NCBI GenBank assembly: GCA_002269645.1
Contig: NIVC01001291.1
Location: forward strand, 190,412 to 254,411
Source of the DNA: Macrostomum lignano
Taxonomy: Eukaryota
Direction of reading: 5' to 3'
Length of the DNA stretch: 64,000 bases
A program made the translations under genes and the position numbers. The notes under the pieces were generated by a model. It was not told where the DNA came from. It made no database searches and worked only from the letters and a program-made list of their open reading frames with translations. Positions 6,601 through 31,227 of this stretch are shown here, piece by piece; position 1 is the first letter of the stretch; each line of letters opens with the position of its first letter.

Positions 6601-6817
6601 CATCACTGACACTGAAATCACTGACACTGACACTGACATCACTAACACTGACATCACTGACACTGGCATCACTGACACTGACACTGACATCACTGACACT
6701 GACACTGACATCACTGACACTGACATCACTGACACTGACATCGCTGACACTGGCATCACTAACACTGACATCACTGACACTGACATCACTGACACTGACA
6801 CTGACATCACTGACACT
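640..6817. repeat. 6.2-kb satellite built from ACTGAC/ACATC sub-units (15-bp TGACATCACTGACAC and 21-bp variants) with higher-order blocks
   Basis: Continuous repeat. The marker ...ACACTCTGACATCACTGAAAATGACATCG recurs at ~1333 and ~2043 (710-bp period). The marker ATCATTGAC recurs at 2591, 3563 and 4520 (972 and 957 bp apart). The long TSLTL/SDVSV/MSVSV ORFs are translations of this repeat. Confidence 0.97.
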
Positions 6818-7299: not shown

Positions 7300-7710
7300 T
7301 GGCGCAAAAATGGACTCATTAGTGCCGAAATGGAACCAATGGTGCTAAAATAGACTAAATGGCGCCAAAGCAGATCAATGGCGCTAAAATAGATCCAATG
7401 GTGCCAAAATTGATCCAATGGCGCCAAAAAAGATTCAATGACGCCAAAATAGAACCAATGACGCCAAAATAGGCCCAGTGGCGCCAAAGTACATCCAATG
7501 GCGCCAAAGAAGACCCAAAAGCGCCAAAACGGACCCAAGGGCGCCAAAATAGATTCTATGGCGCCAAAATAGATCCAATGGCGCTAAAATAGGCCCAGTG
7601 GCGCCAAAATACATCCAATGGCGCCAAAGAAGACCCAAAAGCGCCAAAATAGGCCAATGGCGACAAAATAGATCCAAAGGCGCCAAAGCAGATGAATGGC
7701 GCCAAAATAG
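7300..7710. repeat. ~20-bp minisatellite TGGCGCCAAAATAGATCCAA, about 20 degenerate copies
   Basis: GGCGCCAAA recurs every 19-21 bp; a ~60-bp block is duplicated at 7471 and 7591 (120 bp apart). Confidence 0.9.
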
Positions 7711-10052: not shown

Positions 10053-10560
10053 CCTGCCCCTTCCATCACCCTGCCCCCTTCCATCACCCTGCCCCCTTCC
10101 ATCACCCTGCCCCCTTCCACCACCCTGCCCCCTTCCATCACCCTGCCCCATTCCACCACCCTGCCCCCTTCCACCACCCTGCCCCCTTCCATCACCCTGC
10201 CCCCTTCCACCACCCTGCCCCCTTCCACCACCCTGCCCCCTTCCATCACCCTGCCCCTTCCACCACCCTGCCCCTTCCACCACCCTGCCCCTTCCACCAC
10301 CCTGCCCCTTCCACCACCCTGCCCCCTTCCACCACCCTGCCCCTTCCACCACCCTGCCCCTTCCATCACCCTGCCCCTTCCATCACCCTGCCCCCTTCCA
10401 TCACCCTGCCCCCCTTACACCACCCTGCCCCCTTCCATCACCCGCCCCTTCCATCACCATGCCCCCTTCCATCACCCTGCCCCCTTCCATCACCCTGCCC
10501 CCTTCCATCACCATGCCCCTTCCACCACCCTGCCCCCTTCCACCACCCTGCCATCACCCT
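10053..10560. repeat. 17-18-bp C-rich minisatellite CCATCACCCTGCCCCCTT
   Basis: About 28 tandem copies with CAT/CAC variants; the PLPSPC ORF is its translation. Confidence 0.93.
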
Positions 10561-10595
10561 ACTTGTAACAGAATTGACTCTGATCTGGCGTCTTT

Positions 10596-11060
10596 TAGAA
10601 ACCCCTGTCACCTTCTAGACACCCCAGTCACCTTCCAGACACCCCAGCCACCTTCCAGACATCCCAGTCACCTTCTAGACACCCCAGTCACCTTCCAGCC
10701 ACCCCAGTCACCTTCTAGACATCCCAGCCACCTTCCAGACACCCCTGTCACCTTCTAGACACCCCTGTCACCTTGCAGACACCCCTGTCACCTTGCAGAC
10801 ACCCCTGTCACCTTCTAGACACCCCTGTCACCTTCCAGCCACCCCTGTCACCTTCTAGACACCCCTGTCACCTTCTAGACACCCCTGTCACCTTCTAGAC
10901 ACCCCTGTCACCTTCTAGACACCCCTGTCACCTTCTAGACACCCCTGTCACCTTGCAGACACCCCTGTCACCTTCTAGACACCCCTGTCACCTTGCAGAC
11001 ACCCCTGTCACCTTCTAGACACCCCAGCCACCTTCCAGACACCCCTGTCACCTTCCAGAC
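10596..11060. repeat. 20-bp minisatellite GACACCCCTGTCACCTTCTA
   Basis: About 23 tandem copies. Confidence 0.95.
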
Positions 11061-11919
11061 ATTGTCACAAAAGTCCACCAGAACAATTCTAAAAAAAGTG
11101 GCGCCATAAACATTCCATATTCCACGCCAACCATCTGTAAATTCCATCTCACAAGGCTTAATGCGATTATTGTTTTTCTCAGACCCCAGTTTTCCTCAAA
11201 TTTCATCTCAAGAAGTGGCACAATAATCAGTCTCGCTAGTGCAGCTCTGGCCCATTCGCTCAGCTGGCGAAGCGTGGAATGGGAAATCGCGACTTGCACC
11301 ATGCGGCCGAGAGGCGCCTCGCCTTGAAGCGCTGGCTGATTGAGTTCCCGGCAGGCACTGATACCGAATGCTCACAGCTGCAGGCCTTCTTGCCCTATCG
11401 CTATAGGAATTCCTTCTGGAGACTACTGGGCGAGGGGGCTGCCGCAGTGGCTCCCCTGTCTCTCTCTCCATCTCTCTCAGAGGCGGTCGATAGACTGACT
11501 GACTGACTGACTGCTCACTCAGAGATGAACTGGGTGGCTGGCTCGCTCAGCTAATCAGAAACTGTGTTAGCAACATCGGCTCAACAGCCCTAGCGTCGCT
11601 CAAATATCCTGTCTAGCAATAGCATAGTGAGTGTCCATTAGCTGGGCCCTGGTCGTAGCCGAGTAGCCCGGCAACGCGGCCGGCACAGAGGGAGTCTTTA
11701 TTAAATTATCCAGGAATATAAAAGAGGGACTTCCAACCCGGCTGAAGCGATGCGGGTAGGCTGATGGGATATGAGAGACTGGCTGGCGGATAGGGATCAA
11801 TCCTGAGGGATTAATTTATTCCGACAGAGGGCCAGAGAAGCTCAACGAAAGTGCGCTTTGTACTTCGGAATTACTATTAGCATATGGCCGAAAATAGTCT
11901 AGAAACCTCTGTCCGATCT

Positions 11920-14900
11920 GCCACCGTGTGATTTTGATTGGTTGTCAGGTGAGCCACAGCTTGTGATTTTGATTGGTTGTCAGGTGAGCCACAGTGTGTG
12001 ATTTTGATTGGTTGTCAGGTGAGCCACAGCTTGTGATTTTGATTGGTTGTCAGGTGAGCCACAGCTTGTGATTTTGATTGGTTGTCAGGTGAGCCACAGT
12101 GTGTGATTTTGATTGGTTGTCAGGTGAGCCACAGCTTGTGATTTTGATTGGTTGTCAGGTGAGCCACAGCTTGTGATTTTGATTGGTTGTCAGGTGAGCC
12201 ACAGCTTGTGATTTTGATTGGTTGTCAGGTGAGCCACAGCTTGTGATTTTGATTGGTTGTAAGGTTTGCCACAGTGTGTGATTTTGATTGGTTGTCAGGT
12301 GTGCCACAGCTTGTGATTTTGATTGGTTGTAAGGTTTGCCACAGTGTGTGATTTTGATTGGTTGTCAGGTGTGCCACAGTGTGTGATTTTGATTGGTTGT
12401 CAGGTGAGCCACAGCTTGTGATTTTGATTGGTTGTAAGGTTTGCCACAGTGTGTGATTTTGATTGGTTGTAAGGTTTGCCACAGTGTGTGATTTTGATTG
12501 GTTGTCAGGTGTGCCACAGCTTGTGATTTTGATTGGTTGTAAGGTTTGCCACAGTGTGTGATTTTGATTGGTTGTAAGGTTTGCCACAGTGTGTGATTTT
12601 GATTGGTTGTCAGGTGTGCCACAGCTTGTGATTTTGATTGGTTGTCAGGTGTGCCACAGTGTGTGATTTTGATTGGTTGTCAGGTGTGCCACAGCTTGTG
12701 ATTTTGATTGGTTGTAAGGTTTGCCACAGTGTGTGATTTTGATTGGTTGTAAGGTTTGCCACAGTGTGTGATTTTGATTGGTTGTCAGGTGAGCCACAGC
12801 TTGTGATTTTGATTGGTTGTCAGGTGAGCCACAGCTTGTGATTTTGATTGGTTGTCAGGTGAGCCACAGTGTGTGATTTTGATTGGTTGTCAGGTGAGCC
12901 ACAGCTTGTGATTTTGATTGGTTGTCAGGTGAGCCACAGCTTGTGATTTTGATTGGTTGTCAGGTGAGCCACAGCTTGTGATTTTGATTGGTTGTCAGGT
13001 GAGCCACAGCTTGTGATTTTGATTGGTTGTAAGGTTTGCCACAGTGTGTGATTTTGATTGGTTGTCAGGTGTGCCACAGCTTGTGATTTTGATTGGTTGT
13101 AAGGTTTGCCACAGTGTGTGATTTTGATTGGTTGTCAGGTGTGCCACAGTGTGTGATTTTGATTGGTTGTCAGGTGAGCCACAGCTTGTGATTTTGATTG
13201 GTTGTAAGGTTTGCCACAGTGTGTGATTTTGATTGGTTGTAAGGTTTGCCACAGTGTGTGATTTTGATTGGTTGTCAGGTGTGCCACAGCTTGTGATTTT
13301 GATTGGTTGTAAGGTTTGCCACAGTGTGTGATTTTGATTGGTTGTAAGGTTTGCCACAGTGTGTGATTTTGATTGGTTGTCAGGTGTGCCACAGCTTGTG
13401 ATTTTGATTGGTTGTCAGGTGTGCCACAGTGTGTGATTTTGATTGGTTGTCAGGTGTGCCACAGCTTGTGATTTTGATTGGTTGTAAGGTTTGCCACAGT
13501 GTGTGATTTTGATTGGTTGTAAGGTTTGCCACAGTGTGTGATTTTGATTGGTTGTCAGGTGTGCCACAGCTTGTGATTTTGATTGGTTGTAAGGTTTGCC
13601 ACAGTGTGTGATTTTGATTGGTTGTAAGGTTTGCCACAGTGTGTGATTTTGATTGGTTGTCAGGTGTGCCACAGCTTGTGATTTTGATTGGTTGTCAGGT
13701 GTGCCACAGTGTGTGATTTTGATTGGTTGTCAGGTGTGCCACAGCTTGTGATTTTGATTGGTTGTCAGGTGTGCCACAGCTTGTGATTTTGATTGGTTGT
13801 CAGGTGAGCCACAGCTTGTGATTTTGATTGGTTGTCAGGTGAGCCACAGCTTGTGATTTTGATCGGTTGTCAGGTGTGCCACAGCTTGTGATGTTGATTG
13901 ATTGTCAGGTGTGCCACAACTTGTGATATTGATTGATTTTCAGGTGTACCACAGCTTGTGATTTTGATTGGTTGTCAGGTGAGCCACAGCTTGTGATTTT
14001 GATTGGTTGTCAGGTGAGCCACAGTGTTTGATTTTGATTGGTTGTCAGGTGTGCCACAGTGTGTGATTTTGATTGGTTGTCAGGTGAGCCACAGCTTGTG
14101 ATTTTGATTGGTTGTCAGGTGAGCCACAGCTTGTGATTTTGATTGGTTGTCAGGTGAGCCACAGTGTGTGATTTTGATTGGTTGTAAGGTTTGCCACAGC
14201 TTGTGATTTTGATTGGTTGTCAGGTGAGCCACAGCTTGTGATTTTGATTGGTTGTCAGGTGTGCCACAGTGTGTGATTTTGATTGGTTGTAAGGTGAGCC
14301 ACAGCTTGTGATGTTGATTGGTTGTCAGGTGTGCCACAGCTTGTGATTTTGATTGGTTGTCAGGTGTGCCACAGCTTGTGATTTTGATTGGTTGTCAGGT
14401 GTGCCACAGCTTGTGATATTGATTGATTGTCAGGTGTGCCACAGCTTGTGATTTTGATTGGTTGTAAGGTGAGCCACAGTGTGTGATTTTGATTGGTTGT
14501 AAGGTGAGCCACAGCTTGTGATTTTGATTGGTTGTCAGGTGTGCCACAGCTTGTGATTTTGATTGATTGTCAGGTGTGCCACAACTTGTGATATTGATTG
14601 ATTTTCAGGTGTACCACAGCTTGTGATTTTGATTGGTTGTCAGGTGAGCCACAGTGTTTGATTTTGATTGGTTGTCAGGTGTGCCACAGTGTGTGATTTT
14701 GATTGGTTGTCAGGTGAGCCACAGCTTGTGATGTTGATTGGTTGTCAGGTGAGCCACAGCTTGTGATGTTGATTGATTGTCAGGTGTGCCACAACTTGTG
14801 ATATTGATTGATTTTCAGGTGTACCACAGCTTGTGATTTTGATTGGTTGTCAGGTGAGCCACAGTGTTTGATTTTGATTGGTTGTCAGGTGTGCCACAGT

Positions 14901-15628
14901 GTGTGATTTTGATTGGTTGTCAGGTGAGCCACAGATTGTGATTTTGATTGGTTGTCAGGTGAGCCACAGCTTGTGATGTTGATTGGTTGTCAGGTGAGCC
15001 ACAGTGTGTGATTTTGATTGGTTGTCAGGTGAGCCACAGCTTGTGATTTTGATTGGTTGTCAGGTGAGCCACAGCTTGTGATTTTGATTGGTTGTCAGGT
15101 GTGCCACAGCTTGTGATGTTGATTGGTTGTCAGGTGAGCCACAGTGTGTGATTTTGATTGGTTGTCAGGTGAGCCACAGCTTGTGATGTTGATTGATTGT
15201 CAGGTGAGCCACAGCTTGTGATGTTGATTGGTTGTCAGGTGTGCCACAGTGTGTGATTTTGATTGGTTGTCAGGTGAGCCACAGCTTGTGATTTTGATCG
15301 GTTGTCAGGTGAGCCACAGCTTGTGATTTTGATTGGTTGTCAGGTGTGCCACAGCTTGTGATGTTGATTTATTGTCAGGTGTGCCACAGCTTGTGATTTT
15401 GATTGGTTGTAAGGTGAGCCACAGCTTGTGATTTTGATTGGTTGTCAGGTGAGCCACAGTGTGTGATTTTGATTGGTTGTCAGGTGTGCCACAGTGTGTG
15501 ATTTTGATTGGTTGTCAGGTGTGCCACAGCTTGTGATATTGATTTATTGTCAGGTGTGCCACAGCTTGTGATTTTGATTGGTTGTCAGGTGAGCCACAGC
15601 TTGTGATTTTGATTGGTTGTCAGGTGTG
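11920..15628. repeat. 35-bp satellite GTGATTTTGATTGGTTGTCAGGTGAGCCACAGCTT, about 106 copies
   Basis: Exact 35-bp period with a few alternating variants (GAG/GTG/TTG, CAGCTT/CAGTGT). A 770-bp higher-order duplication is visible as identical ORFs at 12225 and 12995. Confidence 0.98.
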
Positions 15629-17286: not shown

Positions 17287-17729
<443 letters not shown>

Positions 17730-18253
17730 GTACATAGATAGCACTCCAAGCGAACTCAGACAGTCAGCACCAAGTCCCAAAACTGCACCCAAACCCCTTT
17801 TCCCGGCTTCCAGGGATTCTGCAGCCAGTCTTGACTACAGCACCGGCAGCGGCGGCGGCAGCGGCGGCGGCAGCGGCAGAGGCGAAAACAGGATATCCCT
17901 TTTCCAGGAATTCGGCGTTAACGACCCCCTCACCGTGGAGATGGATTCGGACACGGCCGCCTTTCTGTAAGCCCCAAGCACAGCCCCCGCGCTAATGCGC
18001 CACTAAAAGGCATAAAACCGCTGCCGGCCCCGGCAAACAGCAAATTGGTGCCACTCCAACCGGATCGAATTGCCCACCTGTGCAAACAAGCCGTTAAAGC
18101 TTTCCCTAATCCTGTTTTGCCAACCAACACTAATTGGAGAGTCCGATTGCGTTCCAACAGATTGATGGGCAGATATTGAAAACGGGGATGCTTGAAGAGG
18201 GAAATATTGGGCTTGCTGAATAAACAAAAGGTATGGGATAGCATCGACTGCTG

Positions 18254-19290
18254 CTTTTGGTAGACACTCTACCAATGCTGATTTGGGTAGACACTCTACC
18301 AATGCTGTTTCGGGTAGACACTTTACCAATGCTGATTTGGGTAGACACTCTACCAATGCTGATTTAGGTAGACACTCTACCAATGCTGATATGGGTAGAC
18401 ACTCTACCAATGCTGATTTGGGTAGACACTCTACCAATGCTGATTTGGGTAGACACTCTACCAATGCTGATTTGGGTAGACACTCTACCAATGCTGATAT
18501 GGGTAGACACTCTACCAATGCTGATTTAGGTAGACACTCTACCAATGCTGATATGGGTACTGGTAAACACTCTAACAACGCTGATTTAGGTAGAAACTCT
18601 ACCAATGCTGATTTGGGTAGACACTACTCTACCAATGCTGATTTGGGTAGACACTCTACCAATGCTGATTTGGGTACTGGTAAACACTCTACCAATGCTG
18701 ATTTGGGTACTGGTGGACACTCTACCAATGCTGATTTGGGTACTGGTAGACACTCTACCAATGCTGATTTGGGTAGACACTACTCTACCAATGCTGATTT
18801 GGGTAGACACTCTACCAATGCTGATTTGGGTAGACACTCTACCAATGCTGATTTGGGTAGACACTCTACCAATGCTGATTTGGGTAGACACTCTACCAAT
18901 GCTGATTTGGGTAGACACTCTACCAATGCTGATTTGGGTAGACACTGCTCTACCAATGCTGATTTGGGTAGACACTCTACCAATGCTGTTTCGGGTAGAC
19001 ACTCTACCAATGCTGTTTCGGGTAGACACTCTACCAATGCTGTTTCGGGTAGACACTCTACCAATGCTTTTTGGGTACTGGTAGACACTCTACCAATGCT
19101 GATTTGGGTAGACACTACTCTGCCAATGCTGTTTCGGGTAGACACTCTACCAATGCTGATTTGGGTAGACACTACTCTACCAATGCTGATTTGGGTAGAC
19201 ACTCTACCAATGCTGATTTGGGTAGACACTACTCTACCAATGCTGATTTGGGTAGACACTCTACCGATGCTGTTTTGGGTAGACACTCTA
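18254..19290. repeat. 27-bp minisatellite GGGTAGACACTCTACCAATGCTGATTT with 30- and 33-bp variants
   Basis: About 36 copies; insertions of ACT or GGTACT; each unit contains the inverted repeat GGTAG-ACACT-CTACC. Confidence 0.96.
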
Positions 19291-20068
19291 CTGTTCAGGC
19301 AAGTCAGGTCAGTAGGATTTCTATTTGTTCCAAAGAAGTTCAAAGCAAAACTGCCTGTCAGTCAACCGCCTGCGGATATTTGCAGTTCAGCTGAAAATTT
19401 TTGTTTTCTTTTTTAGCGAAAAGAAAACACTCGAAGAGGTGAAGAAAAGTCAAAGGGGATTTAAAAAGAGTGCCGAATGAGGCCACAGGAAGGAATTTGA
19501 CTACACAGCCGGCCAGCTTCCCAGTTTGGAATTGGGAGCCGCGCGAGGTGCCTGTCGCGAATTTCTTCGCCCTAGCAACAACTGCGGCAGTGCACTTTCC
19601 AGCCGTTTGCCGCTCGGTGAAACAGCTTCGAAATCGAAGCGAAGTGTACAGAACAGAGCCTCATCTCCCATCCCCCACCCCAGGCTTGGAATGCGGCCAT
19701 TCCATTCTGCTCCCCAATGCCTCCTGTCCTCCTTCCTCTTCAGTCTGAGACAATTGCGTCCACTTATGACTTTTTTCGTTCCTTTTTTGTGCCTGTTTCT
19801 GCCTGTCTAACCTGGCCGACCCGGCATAGCAACAGTTGCTGTGCGCTGTGCTGCGCAGATATTAGAGCCCCCCCCACCATGCCTAACTATTAGGAAAGTA
19901 AGCTGCAAGTATGCAAGCTGTATCCACTTGAACCTGGCTGCTCGGGTCTGATATTTATAGATATACAACAAATGGGATATTTAGTGGCGCTGATAAAACA
20001 GTGTTGGGGCTTCAAAACTGAGTTTGGGGTTCTAGTTTCACCGTCCTAAATGGAGCTGAAACACAAAT

Positions 20069-21190
20069 AGGCGGCCAACAACAGGAACTAGGTGGCCAAC
20101 AACAGGAACCAGGCTGTCAACAACAGGAACTGAGCAACCAACAACAGGAACTAGGCTGTCAACAACAGGAACTGAGCAACCAACAACAGGAACTAGACAA
20201 CCAACAACAGGAACTAGGCGGCCAACAACAGGAACTAGGCGGCCAACAACAGGAACTAGGCAACCAACACCAGGAACTAGGCAACCAACACCAGGAACTA
20301 GGCAGTCAACAACAGGAACTAGGCGGCCAAGAACAGGAACTAGGCTGTCAACAACAGGAACTGAGCAGCCAACAACAGGAACTGAGCAATCAACAACAGG
20401 AACTGAGCAGCCAACAACAGGAACCTGAGCAGCCAACAACAGGAACCTGAGCAATCAACAACAGGAACTAGGCAGCCAACAACAGGAACTGGGCAATCAA
20501 CAACAGGAACTAGGCAGCCAACAACAGGAACTAGGCAGCCAACAACAGGAACTAGGCAACCAACACCAGGAACTAGGCAACCAACAACAGGAACTAGGCA
20601 ACCAACAACAGGAACTAGGCAACCAACACCAGGAACTAGGCAACCAACAACAGGAACTAGGCAACCAACAACAGGAACTAGGCGGCCAACAACAGGAGCT
20701 AGGCAACCAACAACAGGAACTAAGCAACCAACAACAGGAACTAGGCAACCAACAACAGGAACTAGGCAGCCAACAACAGGAACTAGGCAACCAACAACAG
20801 GAACTAGGCAGCCAACAACAGGAACTAAGCAACCAACAACAGGAACTAGGCAGCCAACAACAGGAACTAGGCAACCAACACCAGGAACTAGGCAACCAAC
20901 AACAGGAACTAGGCAACCAACAACAGGAACTAGGCAACCAACACCAGGAACTAGGCAACCAACAACAGGAACTAGGCAACCAACAACAGGAACTAGGCGG
21001 CCAACAACAGGAGCTAGGCAACCAACAACAGGAACTAAGCAACCAACAACAGGAACTAGGCAACCAACAACAGGAACTAGGCAGCCAACAACAGGAACTA
21101 GGCAACCAACAACAGGAACTAGGCAGCCAACAACAGGAACTAGGCAACCAACAACAGGAACTAGGCAACCAACAACAGGAACTGGGCAAT
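20069..21190. repeat. 21-bp minisatellite CAACAACAGGAACTAGGCAAC, about 53 copies
   Basis: 21-bp period; two 22-bp units near 20421-20450. Confidence 0.96.
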
Positions 21191-22071
21191 CCCGATAAAC
21201 AGGCCCTAAAATTTTTTTTTGCGAGCGGCCCTGCGCTCCAGTCTTTAGTGCGGTGCAGACTCCAAAACGGGATGAACTGAACAAAATGTGTTATGAGCTG
21301 AAATCGAGGAAATGGAGAATTTCTGCAATCCGCCAGACTCTACACACTCATTAATATTCCGAAGCACCGATGGAGCACGAAAAGTACACACAAAAAACAT
21401 GCGCAGAGCCGCTGGCCTCTCTTGTTGACAATTAAAAAATCCCAAATATAGTCTTGGGACAGCTGAGTTTGCGGGCTGCCACATCCCAGTGAGAAGTTTT
21501 TCTTCTTCGCTGGGAAAAGTCCTGACGCGAAGGAAAACTGGTGCGCGAGCCTCCTGGGAGTTTGGGAGCGAGCTGCACCCAAAGTGGCCCAGAAACCTAT
21601 CAATCATGCGCCGCTGCCTGTTGAACAATATTGAGAAACTTTTTTCCTTGGAAACTTCTACTAGCTGCAGCTTTCGCTTTCCCGGTGAGCTTGCAGCTTG
21701 CAAGTTGCGCAATTAACTTTTTTTCAAGACAGTCTCAGGGTGCTCCAGAGCTGCTCTCAAAGCGACGCCTGCGAGAAAGGAAGCTTGCAGTTTCTTAGCA
21801 CTAAATTCACAATTTATTATCTTCTGGATTTCCGATTTGCAAATATCGGTGTTTTGTCTAAGGCGCACTCACAAGGCTCAAAATACAGTTCGGTTCCTCT
21901 TAAATGGATTTCGCAAAGATTTGCTTCAATTTGCCCGCTATTTCAAGTTTTTCGATAGTGTTAGAAAAATGTGAACTAATAAATATTCTCAGTTGCCTAC
22001 TGATAAGTCAATCAATTCGGTAGCATAGTTCGCATTTTAATTGAAAATATCGCCTACTATTTTCACCATAG

Positions 22072-23046
22072 AATTCAACGAGCCTGGCGACGGTACCGCG
22101 GCTACCGGGGTGTCAGCGGCGGCATCAGCGCGAGCAGCCGCTGCTGGCCGATCGATCAGGAGGCGGCCGAGGAGGAGGTGGCCCAGCGAACCCTGGCCAC
22201 TTCCGGCTACATGACCGCCAGCATCAGCAGCTGCTTCAGCAGCGACATCATGCGCAACTCCAACTCCTTCAGCGACTGGATGCGCGTCTCCGCCTCCAAC
22301 ACCGAGGACAACCTGGGCGGCGCTGCGGCCAGCGACGTTCCAACGGCGGCCTCGGCAACTCCGCTGCGCAGCCGCCGACTGGAACAGCTGAAAGAGGCTG
22401 ACTCGCTCTCCATCATGTCTGACTGCTCCGAGCTCATGGGCGAGGTCGGCAAGCTGATGAAGGAGCAGCTGGCCAGCCAGGACGCCCTGCTCCGGCCCAA
22501 GCTGCACCCCCAGCGTCGCCACCGACTCCGACGTCGTCGTGGACGCTGCAGCCGACGTCCTCGACGACTTCCTCGCCGCAGCGTCGAGCTCAACAGCCGG
22601 CGTCGTCGTTGCGCGGTGACGGCGGCGGCGGTGCCTCTCAGCCGGAAGACCCGCAGGAGGCGGCCGAGGAGGCCAGGCGGGAGGAGCGGAAGGCCAACCT
22701 GCTCAGCCTGGCGCAGGAGTTCGCCGAGCTGAAGCGGCGCAACGCCCGCGCCCTGCCGTTTAACCTGCACCGGCTGGGTTGCGCCGGCTCCGAGGATGAG
22801 GACGACGAGGATGATGAAGACGGCACCGCGGGCGATAAGGCTGGAGATGCTGAACAAGGTGAAGAAACGACTGGCGAGACCTACAGCCTGGTGCCGGTGC
22901 CGCTGACCATGCTGACTGCGCCGGAGGCTCGCGAGCAGCGGCAGCAGCGGCTGGCGGGTCTCTTCGCTGCCGGGCACGGCTCGCTAACTGCCGCGGCAGC
23001 TGGAGCTGCTGCCGATGGCGAGTCGGCAGCTGTGCCGCTGAGGAGG
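22072..23046 (+). CDS. IQ-motif-containing exon (IQCJ-like), probable upstream part of the SCHIP1 gene; one apparent 1-bp frameshift at the C5 run 22507-22511
   Basis: Acceptor TTTCACCATAG|22072 (phase 2). It reads IQRAWRRYRGYRG...EAAEEEVAQRTL...KEQLASQDALLRPKLH. Adding one C joins this to P/S/T-rich sequence and to ORF 22609-23082 (EEARREERKANLLSLAQEFAELKRR...RQQRLAGLF...VPLRR). A strong donor AGG|GTGAGT lies at 23047 (phase 0); without splicing the frame stops at TGA 23080-23082. Confidence 0.7.
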
Positions 23047-24399
23047 GTGAGTTCGGCGGAGAGCAGGCCTGGTGGGGACTGAGGAACTGGGGTCAATACT
23101 CATTTTAAAACCTATTTTCTTATGATACTACTGTTGCTTATTCCTACAGTAGTGCAAACTGGGATAAGCGTTTTCAACTATTTTAGGGAGATTTCTGTTT
23201 AAAGAAATTTTGCAATCAATAACTTCTCGGCTATTTTTGGTGCACTGAATCGACTATGGCAAGAATATTAATGAAAAATTTTCAACACAATTGGTTCTCA
23301 ACCGCCTGAGAAGCTTAGTAAATCTTTTCCTTCAAGCCTTGCCGACCGTGCTTGAACCCTAAAGTATAGACCCCCCCCCATGGGATCCGACTGTCTGAGT
23401 CGCTGTTGCATCTTCCAACTTGCGAAAAAATAGGGAATATTTTCGTCCCTCCAAGGACCGACGGAGCTGGAGAAGGAAGAGAATTTCTGAGCGCCCGTAC
23501 AGTTAACTGAATTGCTGCAATAGAAGAGGTTTGATCTATCTCTCCCACTATGGGGCGAGCTGCGATGGCATTTCCCTAGAAACTTTTTCTCAGCCTTGGT
23601 TCCCGTTGCAGCCGACGGGGCAAAAAAAAACTGAGACGGAGAAGGAAGCGACCAAGGACTGCAGATCCTCGCGCACACAAAATTGCATTGCGATATCCGA
23701 CAGGGCGGCTGCGCATGCCGCATCCGATGCCGCTGCTTTTTTGGCCCCTCCAAAGTTCCAGTGAGCCCGGAACTGTTTATCAATTCATAATCCGCAGCCG
23801 CTTCGCTTTCTGCACTGCTTCTTCTACTTATCTTATATTCTTTCTGCTTGGCAATATCTGGGAGTGTGAAGCCCAATGTCTGGATTTCTCTCTTCAGATT
23901 TCTCCATTCCGGATTCCAGGCCAAGAACTCCACGTCTCCCGCATTCATTTCTGTTGAATTCTTGTGGAACACTGAGCTACGGATGCCCAGTAAGCGCAAC
24001 AAGTTTCAACCATTTTTCCACTTCCCTAAAAAGTTCCAAGGAACCGACGAAACTTCCTAATCAGCATCGAAGGCTGGCCCAGACGCGGCCGCCATCAAGC
24101 GTGCATAAACTTCCCTCTCTCTCTAGGCCGCAACAACCGGCCTTCACCCGCTCCGCTCCCCTCATTCAGTTTCGTTAGCAAACTCGTCTTTCTCCCCAAT
24201 AATAATCTCGACCCCTGATCCCCATGCTCTTTCTCTTCTCCGCCCGCCGAATCCCCGGCCGGCCAAGCTGCTCCTCCCCTCCAAATCTCCCCGATCGCTG
24301 CGACAGACATAAAAGTAGCAGCAGGATGCGCGGCTTGGCCAGCTTTCCCTCCGACCGGCCGCCCGCCCGCCTGTCCGCTCGCTGCCTGGGCTGCCTGCC

Positions 24400-24540
24400 A
24401 TGCAGCTGGACCCGCGCAGAGCAGGCGGCATCAACAGCGGCTACGGGTTCTTGGCCGCCATTGGCGAGCTGTGGCTCGGACCGGCCGACATGCTCGGACT
24501 GAGCAGCGTGCGATGGATCTACGCGCCGGAGCAGAGCCAG
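24400..24540 (+). CDS. Candidate alternative first coding exon of SCHIP1 (MQLDPRR...YAPEQSQ)
   Basis: GCCTGCCATG start context; phase-0 donor CAG|GTAGGC at 24541, compatible with the phase-0 acceptor at 26670. No homology recognised. Confidence 0.35.
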
Positions 24541-24649
24541 GTAGGCCAACCAAGCCGCGGCGTTGACAGGTGTCTGCTCAGCGACGACAGCGACTCGAGA
24601 ACGAGCTCTGATTAAACATTGCTGACGAAAGTTGATTACAAAATCGGCT

Positions 24650-24985
24650 GTCATTAGGCTGGGCAACTCAAGCCACATTGAAGAGCCCCCAAAGCGTGCC
24701 TACTGGTCATTAGGCTGGGCAACTCAAGCCGCATTGAAGAGCCCCCAAAGCGTGCCTACTGGTCATTAGGCTGGGCAACTCAAGCCGCATTGAAGAGCCC
24801 CCAAAGCGTGCCTACTGTTCATTAGGCTGGGCAACTCAAGCCGCATTGAAGAGCCCCCAAAGCGTGCCTACTGGTCATTAGGCTGGGCAACTCAAGCCGC
24901 ATTGAAGAGCCCCCAAAGCGTGCCTACTGGTCATTAGGCTGGGCAACTCAAGCCGCATTGAAGAGCCCCCAAAGCGTGCCTACTG
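24650..24985. repeat. 56-bp tandem repeat, six near-perfect copies
   Basis: TCATTAGGCTGGGCAACTCAAGCC starts at 24651, 24707, 24763, 24819, 24875 and 24931; no spacers. Confidence 0.97.
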
Positions 24986-26669
24986 TATGCGCGAGTGCGT
25001 GACTGCGTACTCGTCCGCGTGCACCCGCATGCTCGGGGGTGGCGGAATGGGCAAAACCCCTTGCTTCTATTCTGGCTGCGGATCGACTGTCGTTTTGAAG
25101 TGCGTCGAAGAGTATAATTTAAAGACAAGAGACAAGAATTACAGAGCTCTTGAGGAGAGAAAAATTATGCGAAAATTGCCCGGCTGAGCGAAGGAATTAT
25201 AATTTTTCTTGTCGGCTGTTCTCGGAAACAACTTTTTGCATCTCATATCAAATATTGTTGAAGTGAGGTTAGGATCCGGGGCATAAAAGTATAACAGATA
25301 TTTGCACAAAAGGGTGCACCCTGGCGCAACACCTTCAGTGACATGGTCACACAACCAGCGATGCGGCAATTCTTTCGACTGCGACGACTTTCCAATCGTC
25401 AGTCATGTACATTTTCTGTGCCTCGGGGGTTGGCCCTCATGGTAGTGTGAATCGCACGATAACGTCCAGCTCGGTACTTCTAACAAGGCTCAGGTCAGTT
25501 TCCGCGTATCGAGCGTATCGAAACTTAGACGCCTGCTGTAGCACTTGGCTCTACAAAAAATTCCTGTCACAGCCTCTGACTACTCAGAATGCAAAGTGCC
25601 GTCTGTCAGGATCGATTGATCGTCACTAAAGACGATTTTTATGAGTCGCGATGAAGTTGGATGAAGCACGGACGCTTGGATCGGGCGAGGAAGGGAAGCT
25701 GGCGTATAAAGATGAAGGAGAGAGGACCGGGAGTGAGCGGCTGTCTTGAACAAAGCTACCATCGTCAAGTTGAAGTGCCATTTGCTATACCCAACTGGCG
25801 TGACGGATGGAGCAGCAATGAAGAACTCTTCACTCAGCTTAGGAGAAGTCCTGAGAAGCAGCCGCGCATCCCACTCTGCCACTACGAGCTACCAGTCTTC
25901 TCCCTCGTCTGCCTTCTCTTTAAATCTCTCAACTCAAGTTAATTCAAGCACGAGGGCTCATTTTATTTGCTCTGGAAGTTTGTGTGTGTTTTTCAGTAAA
26001 ATAGAATAGCAGCAAAAGTGTTCCTGAATCCTCACTGAGCTTCAAGGAAAGAAAAGAACTGAGAATCGGGACCGCCTGAACGCTAATGAGTGAAAAGTCA
26101 AGTCAAGCCTAGCTAAGCCAAGCTGGCGTGAAAAAGTAGTCTGCTTGAAGCTCATTTTGGCTCCTCCGTTCCTCTGTTAATTACGCAGCTCTTTCGCTTT
26201 TTGCGAAGTAAATTTCATTTGCTTCATCAACGCCTTTTCGGCCTGTGATAATTTTCAACCATGCAGATCTCCCATCCTAGTTTAATATTGCAATGACGGT
26301 TCTGCATGAATTCTTGACATAAAATCGACCAAAATTTTCTAAAATTTTATTTCAATCGATTCGAAAAAAGTCAGAAAGAGTCTGTTTGGTTCATGTACTT
26401 TAACGCACACAAAAACGATGGCGTGAAATTGACAAAAGAGAAGATGATCGAGAGCTTAGACCCAAGAAGCTAAATATGGCAGACGCTGTGTACATCAATG
26501 TACGCAAAACAAGGGGGCAGGGTGTAAATTGGGGGGTTGGTTTGGAAAGAAGGGCCTAGGGGGACGACAGATTGACTGCTTTATGTACATTCAGTGTACG
26601 GTGTGGGAGAGAGGGAGAGAGAAGTCTGTACAATGAATTCAAAAGCAATTAACCCACCCCATAACCCAG

Positions 26670-27068
26670 ACTGCCGGCCTCTCGGAGCGGGAACGCGTGC
26701 TGCAGGCACTGAGCATGTCAGTCGAAGATGACGATGTGGACAGCGGCTTGGCTTCAACTTCGGCGGCCGTAGCCGGTTGCTTTGGCAACGGCGGTCCCGG
26801 CTGCGTCGGCCTGTCCTCGTCAACGGCCACCACCGCGTCATCATCGGCCACGGCAACCATGGCGGGCTCCGGCCTGGCGCTGGCACCGGCGCAGTCGAAC
26901 GGCATGGAGATGTGCTTCCGCAACGACGCCGCCTCGGACTCGGACTGCTCGGAGGAGGCCGCCAGCCCGGCCGACGGGCCAGACGGTGTTGAAAATCATG
27001 GCGCAGCGATTGACAGCGAGCAGAGCTTCAGGCCGCAGCAAAAAAGGCGGCGAGCACAGGTGTCGCAG
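26670..27068 (+). CDS. SCHIP1: SCHIP1 homologue exon A
   Basis: Acceptor TTAAC...ACCCAG|ACT (phase 0). LSERERVLQALSMSVEDD and SNGMEMCFRNDAASDSD resemble SCHIP1 NERESIRQKLALGSFFDD and QSGMNLQICFVNDSGSDKD (human sequence recalled from memory). The donor is either 27060 or 27069, both phase 0. Confidence 0.75.
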
Positions 27069-27298
27069 GTGAAGAAACCATTCGCAGTAGAACTGGGTTA
27101 AGTAATCACAAGCATAGGCTTATCCCATAGATTAGTCAAACCTGCTGGAAGAGTAAGCATCGTTAAAACGGAGTTTTTCGTTGCCATGGTAACCTAAATT
27201 TTTTAATTATTGTTGAAAACACTCTGGAAGTTTAACAACAGAACTTGAGGTTAAATAACCATGCTAACAACTCAACTCACTTTGAAATCCCCCATAAG

Positions 27299-27484
27299 GC
27301 TGCTGCTCCCATGCAGCTTTGCTTCATCAGCGATCTCACCAGCGACGAAGAGGACGGCGACTGCGCCACTGCCGACGGAGCCCGCCAAGACGACGCGGCC
27401 GACACCGATGATTCAACAGCCGCCAGCGCCAATTCGTCCACGCTGGTCTCCGACTCCGGAATCTGCGATGCCTACAAATCCGAG
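27299..27484 (+). CDS. SCHIP1: SCHIP1 homologue exon B
   Basis: AAAPMQLCFISDLTSDEEDGD...CDAYKSE; acceptor CCATAAG (weak AAG) and donor GAG|GTGAGA, both phase 0. Confidence 0.6.
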
Positions 27485-27630
27485 GTGAGAGATGGAGAAC
27501 TCGCATCCTTGCGGGATGCTGTCATCATATTTGATTCTTAGAAAGTCTTCCTTGAGTCTTAGAAAGTCTTTTACGATTTTATTAGAAGTTTTATGATCAT
27601 TAGATAAGCCTCAAAGTCTGAATCCGACAG

Positions 27631-27864
27631 CTTCAGCCGCTGAACCCATCGGGAGCATCGGACAGTCAAATTACTGGCGTATCTACCGCCGCAGCTACCA
27701 GTTGCTGCAGTACCAGCAGCCTGTCCGGTTCTGCATCCGGTTCCGCATCTGCTGTTACCGCTGGCGCCGCCGCTTCGGCCGGCACCTGCTGCTCGGAAGC
27801 CAGCGATGGCCTGCTGACTCGGCAGGCGCAACTGCAGGCCGAAGCTCAGCTGGCCCTGGCACAA
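27631..27864 (+). CDS. SCHIP1: SCHIP1 homologue exon C
   Basis: Acceptor CCGACAG|, donor CAA|GTGAGT. Ends DGLLTRQAQLQAEAQLALAQ, matching SCHIP1 DFLTRQKKLQAEAKMALAM. Confidence 0.88.
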
Positions 27865-27980
27865 GTGAGTTCTCTTCTGTCCTTAAAAATCCAAGATTAA
27901 TTTATGGTGTACCAGACAGCCGGGTCCCATCGTAGAAAGTTCAATTCGCTACTCTTGACTTGCATCTCACTTTCTCTTCA

Positions 27981-28404
27981 CCACCTCACTTCGCACACAC
28001 ACCTCACTCCTCACCCCCACCTCACTCCGCACACCCACCTCACTCCACACGCCCACCTCACTCCGCACACCCACCTCACTCCTCACGCCCACCTCACTCC
28101 ACACGCCCACCTCACTCCGCACACCCACCTCACTCCACACGCCCACCTCACTCCGCACACGCACCTCACTCCGCACACCCACCTCACTCCACACGCCCAC
28201 CTCACTCTACACACCCACCTCACTCCGCACACCCACCTCACTCCACACGCCCACCTCACTCTACACACCCACCTCACTCCGCACACCCACCTCACTCCAC
28301 ACGCCCACCTCACTCCGCACACCCACCTCACTCCTTACGCCCACCTCATTCCACACACCCACCTCACTCCGCACACCTACCTCACTCCACACACCCACCT
28401 CACT
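27981..28404. repeat. 18-bp intronic minisatellite CACCTCACTCCGCACACC
   Basis: About 23 copies inside the intron between SCHIP1 exons C and D. Confidence 0.95.
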
Positions 28405-28448
28405 AAGCTCCAATATGCAACCTAACAAACCAACCAACCGACCTCCAG

Positions 28449-28641
28449 GCCCGACCAATGGCCCGCATGCAGCTGGAGGTGGAACGCCACGAGCAGCGCA
28501 GCCGCGCCAGCCGCGATCTCGTTGCCGAGTTGATGGGCGTCAGCCCAGCCGCAGCACGCCGTTTCCACCGGGCCCACCTGCAGCAGCTGAGCCTCGGGGC
28601 CCTGCAAGTCATTCACAATGACCTGCTGTGCCGCATTGAGA
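28449..28641 (+). CDS. SCHIP1: SCHIP1 homologue exon D
   Basis: Acceptor CCTCCAG|GCC, donor GAG A|GTGAGT (phase 1). ARPMARMQLEVERH...LQQLSLGALQVIHNDLLCRIE matches AKPMAKMQVEVEKQ...[21 protein letters not shown]. Confidence 0.92.
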
Positions 28642-30077
28642 GTGAGTGTATACACACCTAGTTTCTTCCTCGCAGATTAGCCCGAACTATTCGAGCTACA
28701 TTGCTATTCAGCGCCATTTTGGACAGCTCATTAGGCCCCTCCCATCGGTAGCTTGAGGCGACTTGTCCCGTCCTGTTTTAGGCTGTAAAACAGCACCTGC
28801 ACATCAGTTTTAACGAGCGCACCTGCTATTGCTTATTATCATCCGTTATTATTATGACTATATAGATGGTGAGCGTAGGAAAAATATAACGAAAAGCGCC
28901 AGCCAGCAATGGCAGTAAAGATCGACTGGGCCATCATAAAGCTTCGCTGGTGGGCTGGTGTAGAGTCCTCATTCTGACCATATAAGCGGCCGCTAGCGAG
29001 CTGCACTATTTCCTAGAATTCCAGGGGGGGAGAAGAGGGTCGCGCCGCATCGTCGAGACTGCGGCCCAGAAGATAATGACGTCCGACTTTTAGCAGCTGC
29101 TCCTGCATCGCCTCGGCCAGAAAGTTTGTCCCGTCCCGTCCCGTTCGACATCGAAAGGAATCGATCGGGGTCCCCTATTTCCCATGCCGTGGAACTGGCA
29201 TATGGAATTGGCCATGATATTCTGCAGTATGGAGAGATTTGGGAGGCCCAGTAGCTGCGCAAGCGTCCGTGGGCGTTCGGGTATTCGGCTGCCCGGAACG
29301 TAGAGAATCACTGCAGAGAAAGTGAAAACGGGAAGCCTCCATCGGCCTTTCCCCCAGTCTGCCAGGATGCAGTAATGCACAAAAGTGTATACAGTTCTAT
29401 TTGGCGAATATGGGAGCAGTATAGTGGGAACTATAATGGGGGAAATACGGGTAATTCTTCAGGGCAAGGAAAAATATGTTGGGAAGAAAATGAAGCATTG
29501 GCGCTGTCCGTCTGCCCGGCTGCGTGTGTGTTTTCTCTCCATTTTGGCCTTCAACGGGACCCGTGGCGAGCCGTCTTGAATTCCGGGCAGCCCTCGGGCC
29601 TCGGGACCAAAACACTCGCCGCCGTCATCCATTATCTGCGCCCGCCTGAAGCCCCGCGAGCCTCTCCAAAGGCGAAGGCGAGGCTTCGCGCGCGCGTCTT
29701 TCCGCTGTTCGCTCTCCCCCTTTTTCGCCTCTTAGCCTCGAATTTTTGGACCTCCAGCACAGCCTCCAGGCTTAAAGCATTGCTTTGCTGCATCTGACAG
29801 CTCCAGAGGCTGAAAGAGAGCCTCTATAGGAGCGACTCTATAGAGATGATCCATTAGTGGCTGGCATTCATTTTCTCAGCGAAAGAAAATTAGGCCAGAA
29901 TAGGACATCGGTCACTTCGCTAGCTTAACCAGACGATGGACGCACAAACAAAGCGAGAGCCTTTATCGCTTTTATCTTTCGGGGATTTTGGCCACTAAGA
30001 CCTAACAAGCTAATTTAAACAAATCGGTTCACTAAATAAACAAACGCTTCAAACCCGCCTCTCACCCATTCGCGCAG

Positions 30078-30171
30078 CGCACAACGAGGACCTGGTTAAA
30101 AGCCTAATTGAACGGGACGATCTGCACATGGAGCAGGACTCTATGCTGGTGGAGGTTGAAGATCTCACCAG
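30078..30171 (+). CDS. SCHIP1: SCHIP1 homologue exon E (C-terminal coiled coil)
   Basis: Acceptor CGCGCAG| (phase 1), donor AG|GTAGGT (phase 2). THNEDLVKSLIERDDLHMEQDSMLVEVEDLTR matches [32 protein letters not shown]. Confidence 0.93.
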
Positions 30172-31031
30172 GTAGGTTTCTGCAACATCCGATTTTTTGT
30201 TGGAGGCAGAAGGGCTGTGTCCATTATTGCCCCTTCCACCGACTCCCCTGAGCAGGAAGTACACAAGCGCGCGGATACGTACGCAGTCATACGCCCATTG
30301 AAAACGATACCGTGACAAAAAATCACTAAAAAGTCGTTGCAAACAGCTGACTAGTGACTCTAGGGACTCTGGGTCGACTTTCGGGACAGGAGAGTGTACA
30401 GCGGGCTTAACTTTATTTATCGTTAGACTTGTACACTTCACTGGACCTTGGAGGTTGGCCCTCAAGGGCGTTAATTGCACGAGCAGAGCCAAGCCGAGAT
30501 TCCAATTTAGCCCCAAATTAATTTGGCTACACTTGGAATCGAGCCTGGGCTTGCGCTAGACCACTAGGCTACGGGCCTCCCCTGTAACATCAAATTTCTG
30601 AGAAGCTGTTATGCACCTAAATGTAGCTTTTGAGTGCAATGCATTCTCTATTCACTCGTGCGCACTTCCTTTGAAGTTTTGATTTACAATCCAAATGGTT
30701 TACGGGGGGGCGGCCCCAGGCTGCTTAACATGTAATTCCGGAATTCCAATTCATCCCGGACCACTTCGGAAGTGATCTGCACAGGAAAGAGTTGCAGCCG
30801 GGGGTGGGTCCAGAATGACAGCATTGGGCCGGCTGCAATTTGCCCAATAAAATATCTAATAGGGCTTGATGCAGCTGCGTAGACTGGAAGGCTGCAGATT
30901 TCAACTGGCAGTTCAGCGCAAAGGTCGAATGCGTATTTCTCTTTTAATCTGGGGTCAAATCAAGCTGAGGTCATCAAACTGAGGGCTTCCATACTGCACC
31001 GTTCTTGAATCCAAGCACGCATTGATTCCAG

Positions 31032-31227
31032 GCGCGCTCAAGAGGTTGCCAATCGACTTCAGGAGGCACCAAAGCAGCAACAGTCGGCGGCGGGTGCCGC
31101 AGCATCGGCTGCAAAGTCGACGGCTGCCGCGGCAACCTCTCCGGTGCGCAGAAAGATGTCTTCGTTGACGTCGCGGCTGAAGCCAAACAAGCTGGTGTCG
31201 CTGTTCACCGGAGGCGGCGGCAACTGA
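31032..31227 (+). CDS. SCHIP1: SCHIP1 homologue terminal exon F
   Basis: Acceptor TGATTCCAG| (phase 2, completing AGG). RAQEVANRLQEAPKQQQ...LVSLFTGGGGN ends at TGA 31225-31227. Confidence 0.75.

Follow-up and report, generated by a model that had tools for sequence, protein, structure and literature searches.

The IQ-like motif and SCHIP-1_C domain of a probable IQCJ-SCHIP1 orthologue are joined in one gene in the flatworm Macrostomum lignano

The vertebrate IQCJ-SCHIP1 protein is described as a read-through fusion, from a locus named as two genes plus a read-through gene. A stretch of 64,000 bp from the flatworm Macrostomum lignano (assembly GCA_002269645.1, contig NIVC01001291.1, positions 190,412 to 254,411; hereafter the window) raises the question of whether the two parts were ever separate, because a first-pass annotation of its sequence proposed that an exon opening with an IQ motif is spliced in frame to SCHIP1, and that such a gene may be ancestral to bilaterians. 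We find that positions 17941-31227 of the forward strand very probably hold one copy (BOX15_Mlig007663g2) of the M. lignano SCHIP1 / IQCJ-SCHIP1 orthologue, with long and short isoforms made from alternative 5' exons. The splice on which the proposal turned, from 23046 to 26670, is real.

Evidence for this splice comes from PAA57421.1 (P0010, BOX15_Mlig007663g3, UniProt A0A267E772), a hypothetical protein of 767 aa from a sister copy of the locus on contig NIVC01002491.1 of the same assembly, approximately 98.5% identical to the window copy. The protein runs in the order MDSDTAAFL-IQRAWRRYRGYRG … LRPKLHPPASPPTPTSS … AAVPLRR-TAGLSERERVLQAL …, its C-terminal end being SCHIP-1_C, and it holds both the exact junction (…AVPLRR|TAGLSERERV…) and, as …KLHPPASPPTPTSS…, a reading frame that is interrupted in the window copy. 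It sits in a 90% cluster represented by the shorter PAA69799.1, from whose member list it was recovered; its database label gives the SCHIP-1_C domain only and leaves the IQ motif unnamed. GenBank models of this assembly derive from StringTie/TACO assemblies of RNA-seq data and a de novo transcriptome, with open reading frames (ORFs) called by TransDecoder (PMC5730564), so the junction has transcript support. PAA57421.1 and the window product represent the same gene, with identical exon structure, the same start (MDSDTAAFL-IQRAWRRYRG) and the same PLRR|TAGLSERERV junction. PAA57421.1 thus carries the IQ-like motif and SCHIP-1_C on one mRNA, and the exons of the window give that protein only after repair of a single base.

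The sequence details given earlier, splice sites included, are all borne out at their stated positions. The IQ exon follows an acceptor ag|A at 22071/22072, where the A completes a split codon and is followed by ATT CAA CGA GCC TGG CGA CGG TAC CGC (IQRAWRRYR); it ends at a phase-0 donor, AGG|GTGAGT, at 23046/23047; and the first SCHIP1 core exon opens at a phase-0 acceptor, cccag|ACT, at 26669/26670, with Pfam SCHIP-1_C in the exons downstream. Reading through the 23046 donor adds VSSAESRPGGD and meets a stop 36 nt on, as the first-pass annotation had stated in raising a stand-alone IQ isoform. In that alternative the IQ exon would also serve as terminal exon of a separate IQCJ-like transcript, comparable to the stand-alone IQCJ product that vertebrates have. 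The stop is there, but the isoform found no supporting evidence: such a model is annotated on none of the four copies of the locus in the assembly, the donor is a strong consensus site, and the exon holds N-terminal SCHIP1 blocks that in other animals are always followed by SCHIP-1_C. We therefore regard a stand-alone transcript as improbable.

The long isoform consists of E1 and E2, followed by the 23046→26670 splice to six common exons that end in the SCHIP-1_C coiled coil (Table 1). The short isoform starts at an internal exon within intron 2 of the long one, and has neither the IQ motif nor the N-terminal blocks; its first exon is the start of P0009 (PAA46232.1/PAA71799.1, 480 aa) and of P0002 (PAA69799.1). 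All introns of the eight-exon model are bordered by GT-AG. With one C added at the C run, the long model translates to 767 aa, 6 of them different from PAA57421.1, and the short model (ATG at 24400, donor after 24540, joined to E3) to 480 aa, 2 of them different from PAA46232.1. E1 equals the N-terminus of PAA57421.1 and is 99.3% identical to L004 and L005, two of the sister copies. In L002 the annotated end of the gene is equivalent to window position 31227. Membership in the SCHIP-1_C family (PF10148, cut-off 23.5 bits) is clear for both P0002 (136.1 bits) and P0010 (134.9 bits). A pattern search for the last SCHIP1 exon (LNEEL or RDELH) gave no match because the flatworm sequence reads HNEDLV…RDDLH. 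The only GenBank model on the window copy is PAA69799.1 (BOX15_Mlig007663g2), a 5'-partial short isoform whose locus, NIVC01001291.1:204769-231638 (GCA_002269645.1, Mlig_3_7), matches window 14358-41227 at 100% identity.

Table 1. Exons of the SCHIP1 / IQCJ-SCHIP1 locus and other features of the window
Feature	Position	Strand	Details
E1, long (IQ) isoform, coding part	17941..17966	+	ATG GAT TCG GAC ACG GCC GCC TTT CT|gtaagc = MDSDTAAF + 2 bases of Leu; phase-2 intron
E2, 'IQ exon', 975 nt	22072..23046	+	acceptor ag|A phase 2, donor AGG|GTGAGT phase 0; codes for (L)IQRAWRRYRGYRG, TLATSGYM…SSCF, SIMSDCSELMG, LLSLAQEFAELKRRNARALPFNLH, EQRQQRLAGLF…PLRR
C5 run, one base short relative to three sister copies	22507..22511	+	four-copy alignment
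Alternative first coding exon, short isoform	24400..24540	+	MQLDPRRAGG…APEQSQ|gtaggc, phase 0
E3, first exon common to both isoforms	26670..27068	+	TAGLSERERVLQALS…MEMCFRNDAASDSD…RRRAQVSQ; identical to P0002
E4	27299..27484	+	AAAPMQLCFISDLTSDEED…DAYKSE
E5, Ser/Ala-rich linker and start of SCHIP-1_C (LLTRQAQLQAEAQLALAQ)	27631..27864	+	PF10148 E = 1.6e-4, exon alone
E6, SCHIP-1_C core, ARPMARMQLEVERH…LQVIHNDLLCRIE	28449..28641	+	donor phase 1; PF10148 E = 7.6e-11, 42.7 bits, exon alone
E7	30078..30171	+	(T)HNEDLVKSLIERDDLHMEQDSMLVEVEDLT
E8, last coding exon, RRAQEVANRLQ…LVSLFTGGGGN	31032..31227	+	stop TGA 31225-31227; found by tblastn with P0010
Repeated ORFs, ~7 copies of ~660-730 aa	32413-56118	alternating	MESAEAALAALVDDDPDAF…
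Long ORF, 755 aa	61091-63355	-	
Long ORF, 235 aa	23301-24005	-	in SCHIP1 intron 2
Minisatellite/microsatellite arrays	640-6817, 7300-7710, 10053-11061, 11927-15628, 17287-17741, 18249-19291, 20068-21189, 24650-24985, 27981-28404		periods 4 to 60 bp

As assembled, the window copy has a broken long ORF. The IQ frame (22073 mod 3) is protein-like to approximately 22510, from where the conserved protein is carried by the -1 frame (22075 mod 3) as far as the donor, and the uncorrected ORF shifts and stops at 22727-22729 to give a 228-aa product. The two frames belong to one protein because the IQ block lies in the first and the LSLAQEFAELK block in the second, a conclusion that holds without PAA57421.1. 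Pfam searches with each of the two frames alone yielded nothing useful, and a database search with the mended exon gave one weak metagenome match only, its list of 8000 candidates perhaps being crowded by low-complexity words. Besides the window copy of the locus, the assembly has three more, L004, L005 and L006, all collinear with it. In the 1.1 kb around E2 the sister copies are 98.3-98.5% identical to the window, and a single indel separates them, at a site where the window has CTGCA-CCCCCAGC, L004 CTGCACCCCCCAGC and L005 and L006 CTGCATCCCCCAGC. The three other copies read CACCCCCCA or CATCCCCCA, the copy encoding PAA57421.1 having CACCCCCCA with its frame intact, whereas the window alone is without that base and has CACCCCCA; the six-base form of the run is CACCCCCC, against five Cs in the window. 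Two other accounts of the frame change, a path with two indels through the protein-like middle frame SVATDSDVVVDAAADVLDDFL and a small intron, were rejected, as the sister copies differ by exactly one base.

We lean towards reading the missing base as a residual homopolymer error of the PacBio assembly in a four-copy region. Mlig_3_7 is a PacBio/Canu assembly polished with Pilon, in which 180 Mb of blocks are duplicates at least 95% identical (PMC5730564). C homopolymers are a classic place for residual PacBio consensus deletions, and short-read polishing is poor here because the region is duplicated at high identity: it is weak where reads map to multiple places, as they would among four copies 98-99% identical. 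The window copy shows no further disabling change, with all splice sites intact. Its variants include 22127 A, 22761 T, 22824 C, 22829 C and 22837 A, and a hand count from the alignment and translations gives 3 non-synonymous and 3 synonymous window-specific substitutions in E2, hence no sign of decay. A real one-base deletion is a tentative second explanation, which we hold at clearly lower probability. The long isoform of the window copy would then be disabled, yielding either an IQ protein of 228 aa whose out-of-frame tail is Arg-rich or a substrate of nonsense-mediated decay; the window copy would make the short isoform only, and the three other copies would supply the IQ-SCHIP1 protein. 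Consistent with this, the gap occurs in one of the four copies, the sole GenBank model on that copy is the short, partial PAA69799.1, the Pilon polishing drew on Illumina and RNA-seq data, and loss of an isoform from one of four redundant copies would be cheap. The earlier suspicion of a missing C is thus borne out, the base being absent from the window copy alone, more probably through an assembly error than through a real frameshift.

With the frame restored, E2 represents the whole N-terminal half of long SCHIP1 and contains four blocks collinear with those in the proteins of other animals (compared with P0005, P0006, P0008, P0040, P0078 and P0033; alignments A1, A3). The first block, IQRAWRRY, belongs to an IQRxWRxY pattern that is invariant in five aligned invertebrate sequences (alignment A1), and the human IQCJ string IIQRAWREY, cited in the first-pass annotation, is present in the vertebrate-type representative P0033 (KVKIIQRAWREYLQRQ). 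The second, SIMSDCSELMG, is the counterpart of S[IV][VL]SDYSE (the SDxSE block). The third, LLSLAQEFAELKRRNARALPFNLH (LSLAQEFAELK…ALPF.LH), matches an invertebrate mRNA-derived protein by BLASTP at E = 9e-12; a profile comparison gives E = 3.5e-11. The fourth, EQRQQRLAGL, lies at the position of MDW..LE..LAGL in the others, with its MDW part degenerate; the likeness of RQQRLAGLF to LEKHLAGLQF noted in the first-pass annotation is correctly placed, and QWRALEQRLAEL in a paralogue bridges both forms. Set against the PF00612 consensus, [FILV]Qxxx[RK]Gxxx[RK]xx[FILVWY], the flatworm motif IQRAWRRYRGYRGV has the IQxxxR core and the hydrophobic position 14; it is best called IQ-like, as in vertebrate IQCJ, and orthologous to the motif there. 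Against PF15157 ('Fusion protein IQCJ-SCHIP1 with IQ-like motif') the alignment covers profile positions 44-95 only: M. lignano has just 9 residues ahead of its IQ, which leaves the first 43 positions unmatched. One might still ask whether IQRAWR is a chance hexapeptide in a GC-rich ORF, its exon unrelated to IQCJ-SCHIP1: the motif alone falls under Pfam thresholds, and the short motif segment by itself has no significant BLASTP alignment. We give this next to no credence, for the invariant IQRxWRxY stands in the same place relative to three more conserved blocks, is preceded by a phase-matched intron in each of three genomes, and belongs to a deposited 767-aa SCHIP-1_C protein.

That intron is of phase 2 and, in M. 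lignano, lies directly ahead of the isoleucine of IQ (CT|A ATT CAA). An intron at the same position and in the same phase occurs in the annelid Dimorphilus gyrociliatus (AA|gtgagt…tttag|A ATT CAA) and in a metagenomic contig, L001 (tgtag|A ATC CAA), so that position and phase upstream of IQ are conserved across all three. The large exon includes IQ in both Dimorphilus and M. lignano, whereas IQ has its own mini-exon in L001, where the large exon ends, as in the flatworm, at a phase-0 donor about 10 residues before the ERE.IR..LA block. L001 is eukaryotic (ENA metagenome assembly ERZ25071447, contig ctg87012, 664 kb), and in it the IQ mini-exon RIQRGWRAYLKRK precedes the large N-terminal exon of SCHIP1 by some 800 bp; it is probably a gastropod, to judge from MTVLTPEENQ, which resembles MTLLTPEENQ of Physella.

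How far this architecture extends was examined with a HMMER profile of four IQ-SCHIP1 proteins, run against 1.84 billion representatives, which returned 1263 matches, with the IQ signature in 16 of the 150 top matches. An IQ-like motif and SCHIP-1_C are found in a single protein in molluscs (Haliotis cracherodii, H. rufescens, Ylistrum balloti, Patella vulgata), a nemertean (Tubulanus polymorphus), a brachiopod (Lingula anatina), a hemichordate (Saccoglossus kowalevskii), echinoderms (Asterias, Lytechinus, Anneissia, Apostichopus) and a cephalochordate (Branchiostoma lanceolatum). The motif also occurs in the annelids Paralvinella (a 432-aa model that ends before SCHIP-1_C), Helobdella (IQQAWRRYRE) and Dimorphilus, the last carrying Pfam IQ, PF15157 and PF10148. 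For both Haliotis species, Ylistrum and Branchiostoma, NCBI names a model 'IQCJ-SCHIP1 readthrough transcript protein-like'. Two further sequences, P0005 and P0006, are uninterrupted ORFs of 690 and 668 aa on contigs of approximately 2.9 kb, from one JGI sample (contig 2976 bp) and one Logan assembly of run SRR23076769; these contigs are mRNA-like, so IQ and SCHIP-1_C are on one transcript there too. A database search with the block profile returned unnamed fragments only, without its own members, and carried no taxonomic information. The proposal that other invertebrate SCHIP1 proteins bear the IQ motif is accordingly upheld by HMMER and Pfam in Dimorphilus, P0005, P0006 and named RefSeq proteins of several phyla.

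The relatives compared in detail (Haliotis XP_071086652.1, Ylistrum XP_060063913.1, Branchiostoma XP_066266423.1, Lingula XP_013392216.1, Tubulanus XP_074657986.1, Saccoglossus XP_006811401, Asterias XP_033637751.1 and Dimorphilus DgyrCDS4324) share with the flatworm IQRAWR.Y, SDYSE, LSLAQEFA…ALPF and SCHIP-1_C in one protein. Dimorphilus further shares the phase-2 intron and the fusion of IQ to the large N-terminal exon, and the scallop Ylistrum has a very short N-terminus on its IQ-bearing isoform (METNS-IQRAWRSY…) and, like the flatworm, an IQ-less isoform as well. Most named invertebrate proteins contain both PF15157 and PF10148 by Pfam, and most have upstream a second, canonical IQ (PF00612) and an EEGELL…NHKLE segment, both of which are absent from M. 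lignano. The orthologues mostly exceed the PF15157 cut-off of 28 bits (28.3-50.3 bits): 8 of 9 tested relatives pass or narrowly miss it (Apostichopus, 26.3 bits) and Lytechinus has no match, while the flatworm fails.

Vertebrate IQCJ-SCHIP1 (P0007 of Candoia aspera and the 563-aa P0033) follows the same order: the IQ-like KVKIIQRAWREY, an acidic Ser-rich region, an (L)SLAQE-like block, the MDWEALEKHLAGL block, ERE.IRQKLA, M.LQICFVND and the SCHIP-1_C coiled coil. Vertebrates also have shorter IQ-less isoforms from internal starts, which we take to be comparable to the flatworm short isoform. The two differ in that approximately 50 residues of PF15157 sequence precede IQ in vertebrates compared with 9 in M. 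lignano, whose motif, unlike that of vertebrate IQCJ-SCHIP1, fails the PF15157 threshold. The flatworm protein also has long Ala/Ser/Thr-rich inserts and a duplicated M.xCFxND block. Other animals have this acidic Ser-rich block, M-x-[ML]-CF-x-[NS]-D, once, and M. lignano and its paralogue have it twice; the two copies lie at window 26900-26960 in E3 (MEMCFRNDAASDSD) and 27308-27360 in E4 (MQLCFISDLTSDEED).

The M. lignano paralogue, PAA63315.1, has a homologous exon with a like donor (RKRR|GTGAGA) joined to core exons. Its gene (BOX15_Mlig000873g2, L003 12838-13214, contig NIVC01001856.1) has a shortened E2 that starts at TEESLRHWP, without the IQ, SDxSE and LSLAQEFAELK blocks, and keeps TLATSGYM…SSCF and QWRALEQRLAEL.

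Several observations weigh against this interpretation. Support for the junction comes from a transcript-based model deposited for a sister copy, and copies 98-99% identical are hard to separate by RNA-seq. The window copy itself has in GenBank just the short, 5'-partial PAA69799.1, which also fits a real frameshift, and polishing with Illumina and RNA-seq reads would be expected to clear many homopolymer errors. The IQ motif scores 11.9 bits both against PF00612 (cut-off 20.3) and against PF15157 (cut-off 28), and departs from IQxxxRGxxxR in that G7 is R and the second basic residue is moved to position 12. The motif can be lost, since the M. lignano paralogue and a millipede model are both without it. 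Finally, calmodulin binding and all partner interactions are matters that we infer by analogy.

On balance, the suggestion that IQ+SCHIP1 is an ancestral bilaterian gene is supported by IQ-bearing SCHIP1 proteins in many invertebrate groups, and IQ and SCHIP1 in one gene would represent the ancestral state in place of a flatworm peculiarity. We consider it likely that the last common bilaterian ancestor had a single gene encoding an IQ-like motif, N-terminal acidic blocks and SCHIP-1_C, with a phase-2 intron before IQ and with IQ-bearing and IQ-less isoforms from alternative 5' exons. On this view, the vertebrate trio of IQCJ, SCHIP1 and their 'read-through fusion' would be an artefact of annotation, with stand-alone IQCJ as a derived by-product. 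Abascal et al. (2018) suggested that human IQCJ-SCHIP1 is a single gene, and at least one study lists it among transcription-derived gene fusions (PMC6764479). Our literature search found no paper making the comparative, invertebrate case for IQCJ-SCHIP1.

By analogy with vertebrate IQCJ-SCHIP1 and Drosophila Schip1, the flatworm protein may be a scaffold associated with the cytoskeleton and membrane. The SCHIP1 C-terminal region interacts with FERM proteins (merlin/Expanded) or ankyrins in vertebrate and Drosophila work. In M. lignano the C-terminal coiled coil would similarly oligomerise and bind ankyrin, FERM proteins or similar partners, the long isoform would come under calmodulin regulation through its N-terminal IQ-like motif, and the acidic Ser-rich blocks (SDxSE, CFxNDxxSDxD/E) appear to resemble CK2-type phosphorylation sites. 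Drosophila Schip1, an adaptor of Expanded and Tao-1 in Hippo signalling, is the sole invertebrate member for which we found functional data (PMC5882220); it is likened to the flatworm protein by membership of the SCHIP1 family, and its Hippo function is not transferable without experiment.

Elsewhere in the window, ORFs of about 660-730 aa recur in alternating orientation downstream of the gene, in blocks of approximately 7.4 kb that repeat at 98-99% identity, with some copies split by frameshifts. Searches of these ORFs against Pfam and PDB sequences found no match; they may represent a mobile element or a gene family particular to the lineage. The two long minus-strand ORFs have no Pfam match. 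Several of the tandem arrays sit within introns 1, 2 and 5 of the SCHIP1 gene; the GC-rich exons and many minisatellites are attributable to this being flatworm DNA. Gene calls of 50 aa upstream on sister copies L005 and L006 proved spurious, being translations of a 21-bp minisatellite.

Much of this was already public: the protein is deposited as hypothetical, and annotations from across the bilaterians show the architecture, for which a Pfam family exists. The sequence was read correctly and the annotation can usefully be mended, but this is no discovery, and the biological gain is small, given that the protein, its relatives and the single-gene idea were available. For the annotation, the long IQ isoform is missing from GenBank on this contig because one base of the C run is absent, and the gene model should gain exons 17941-17966 and 22072-23046. 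For the family, the flatworm adds one phylum to the pattern of IQ and SCHIP1 as one ancient gene. The vertebrate 'read-through fusion' name is misleading because the two parts belong, in all likelihood, to that one gene, and under this label genome-wide studies discard the product or count it among recent gene fusions (e.g. PMC6764479).

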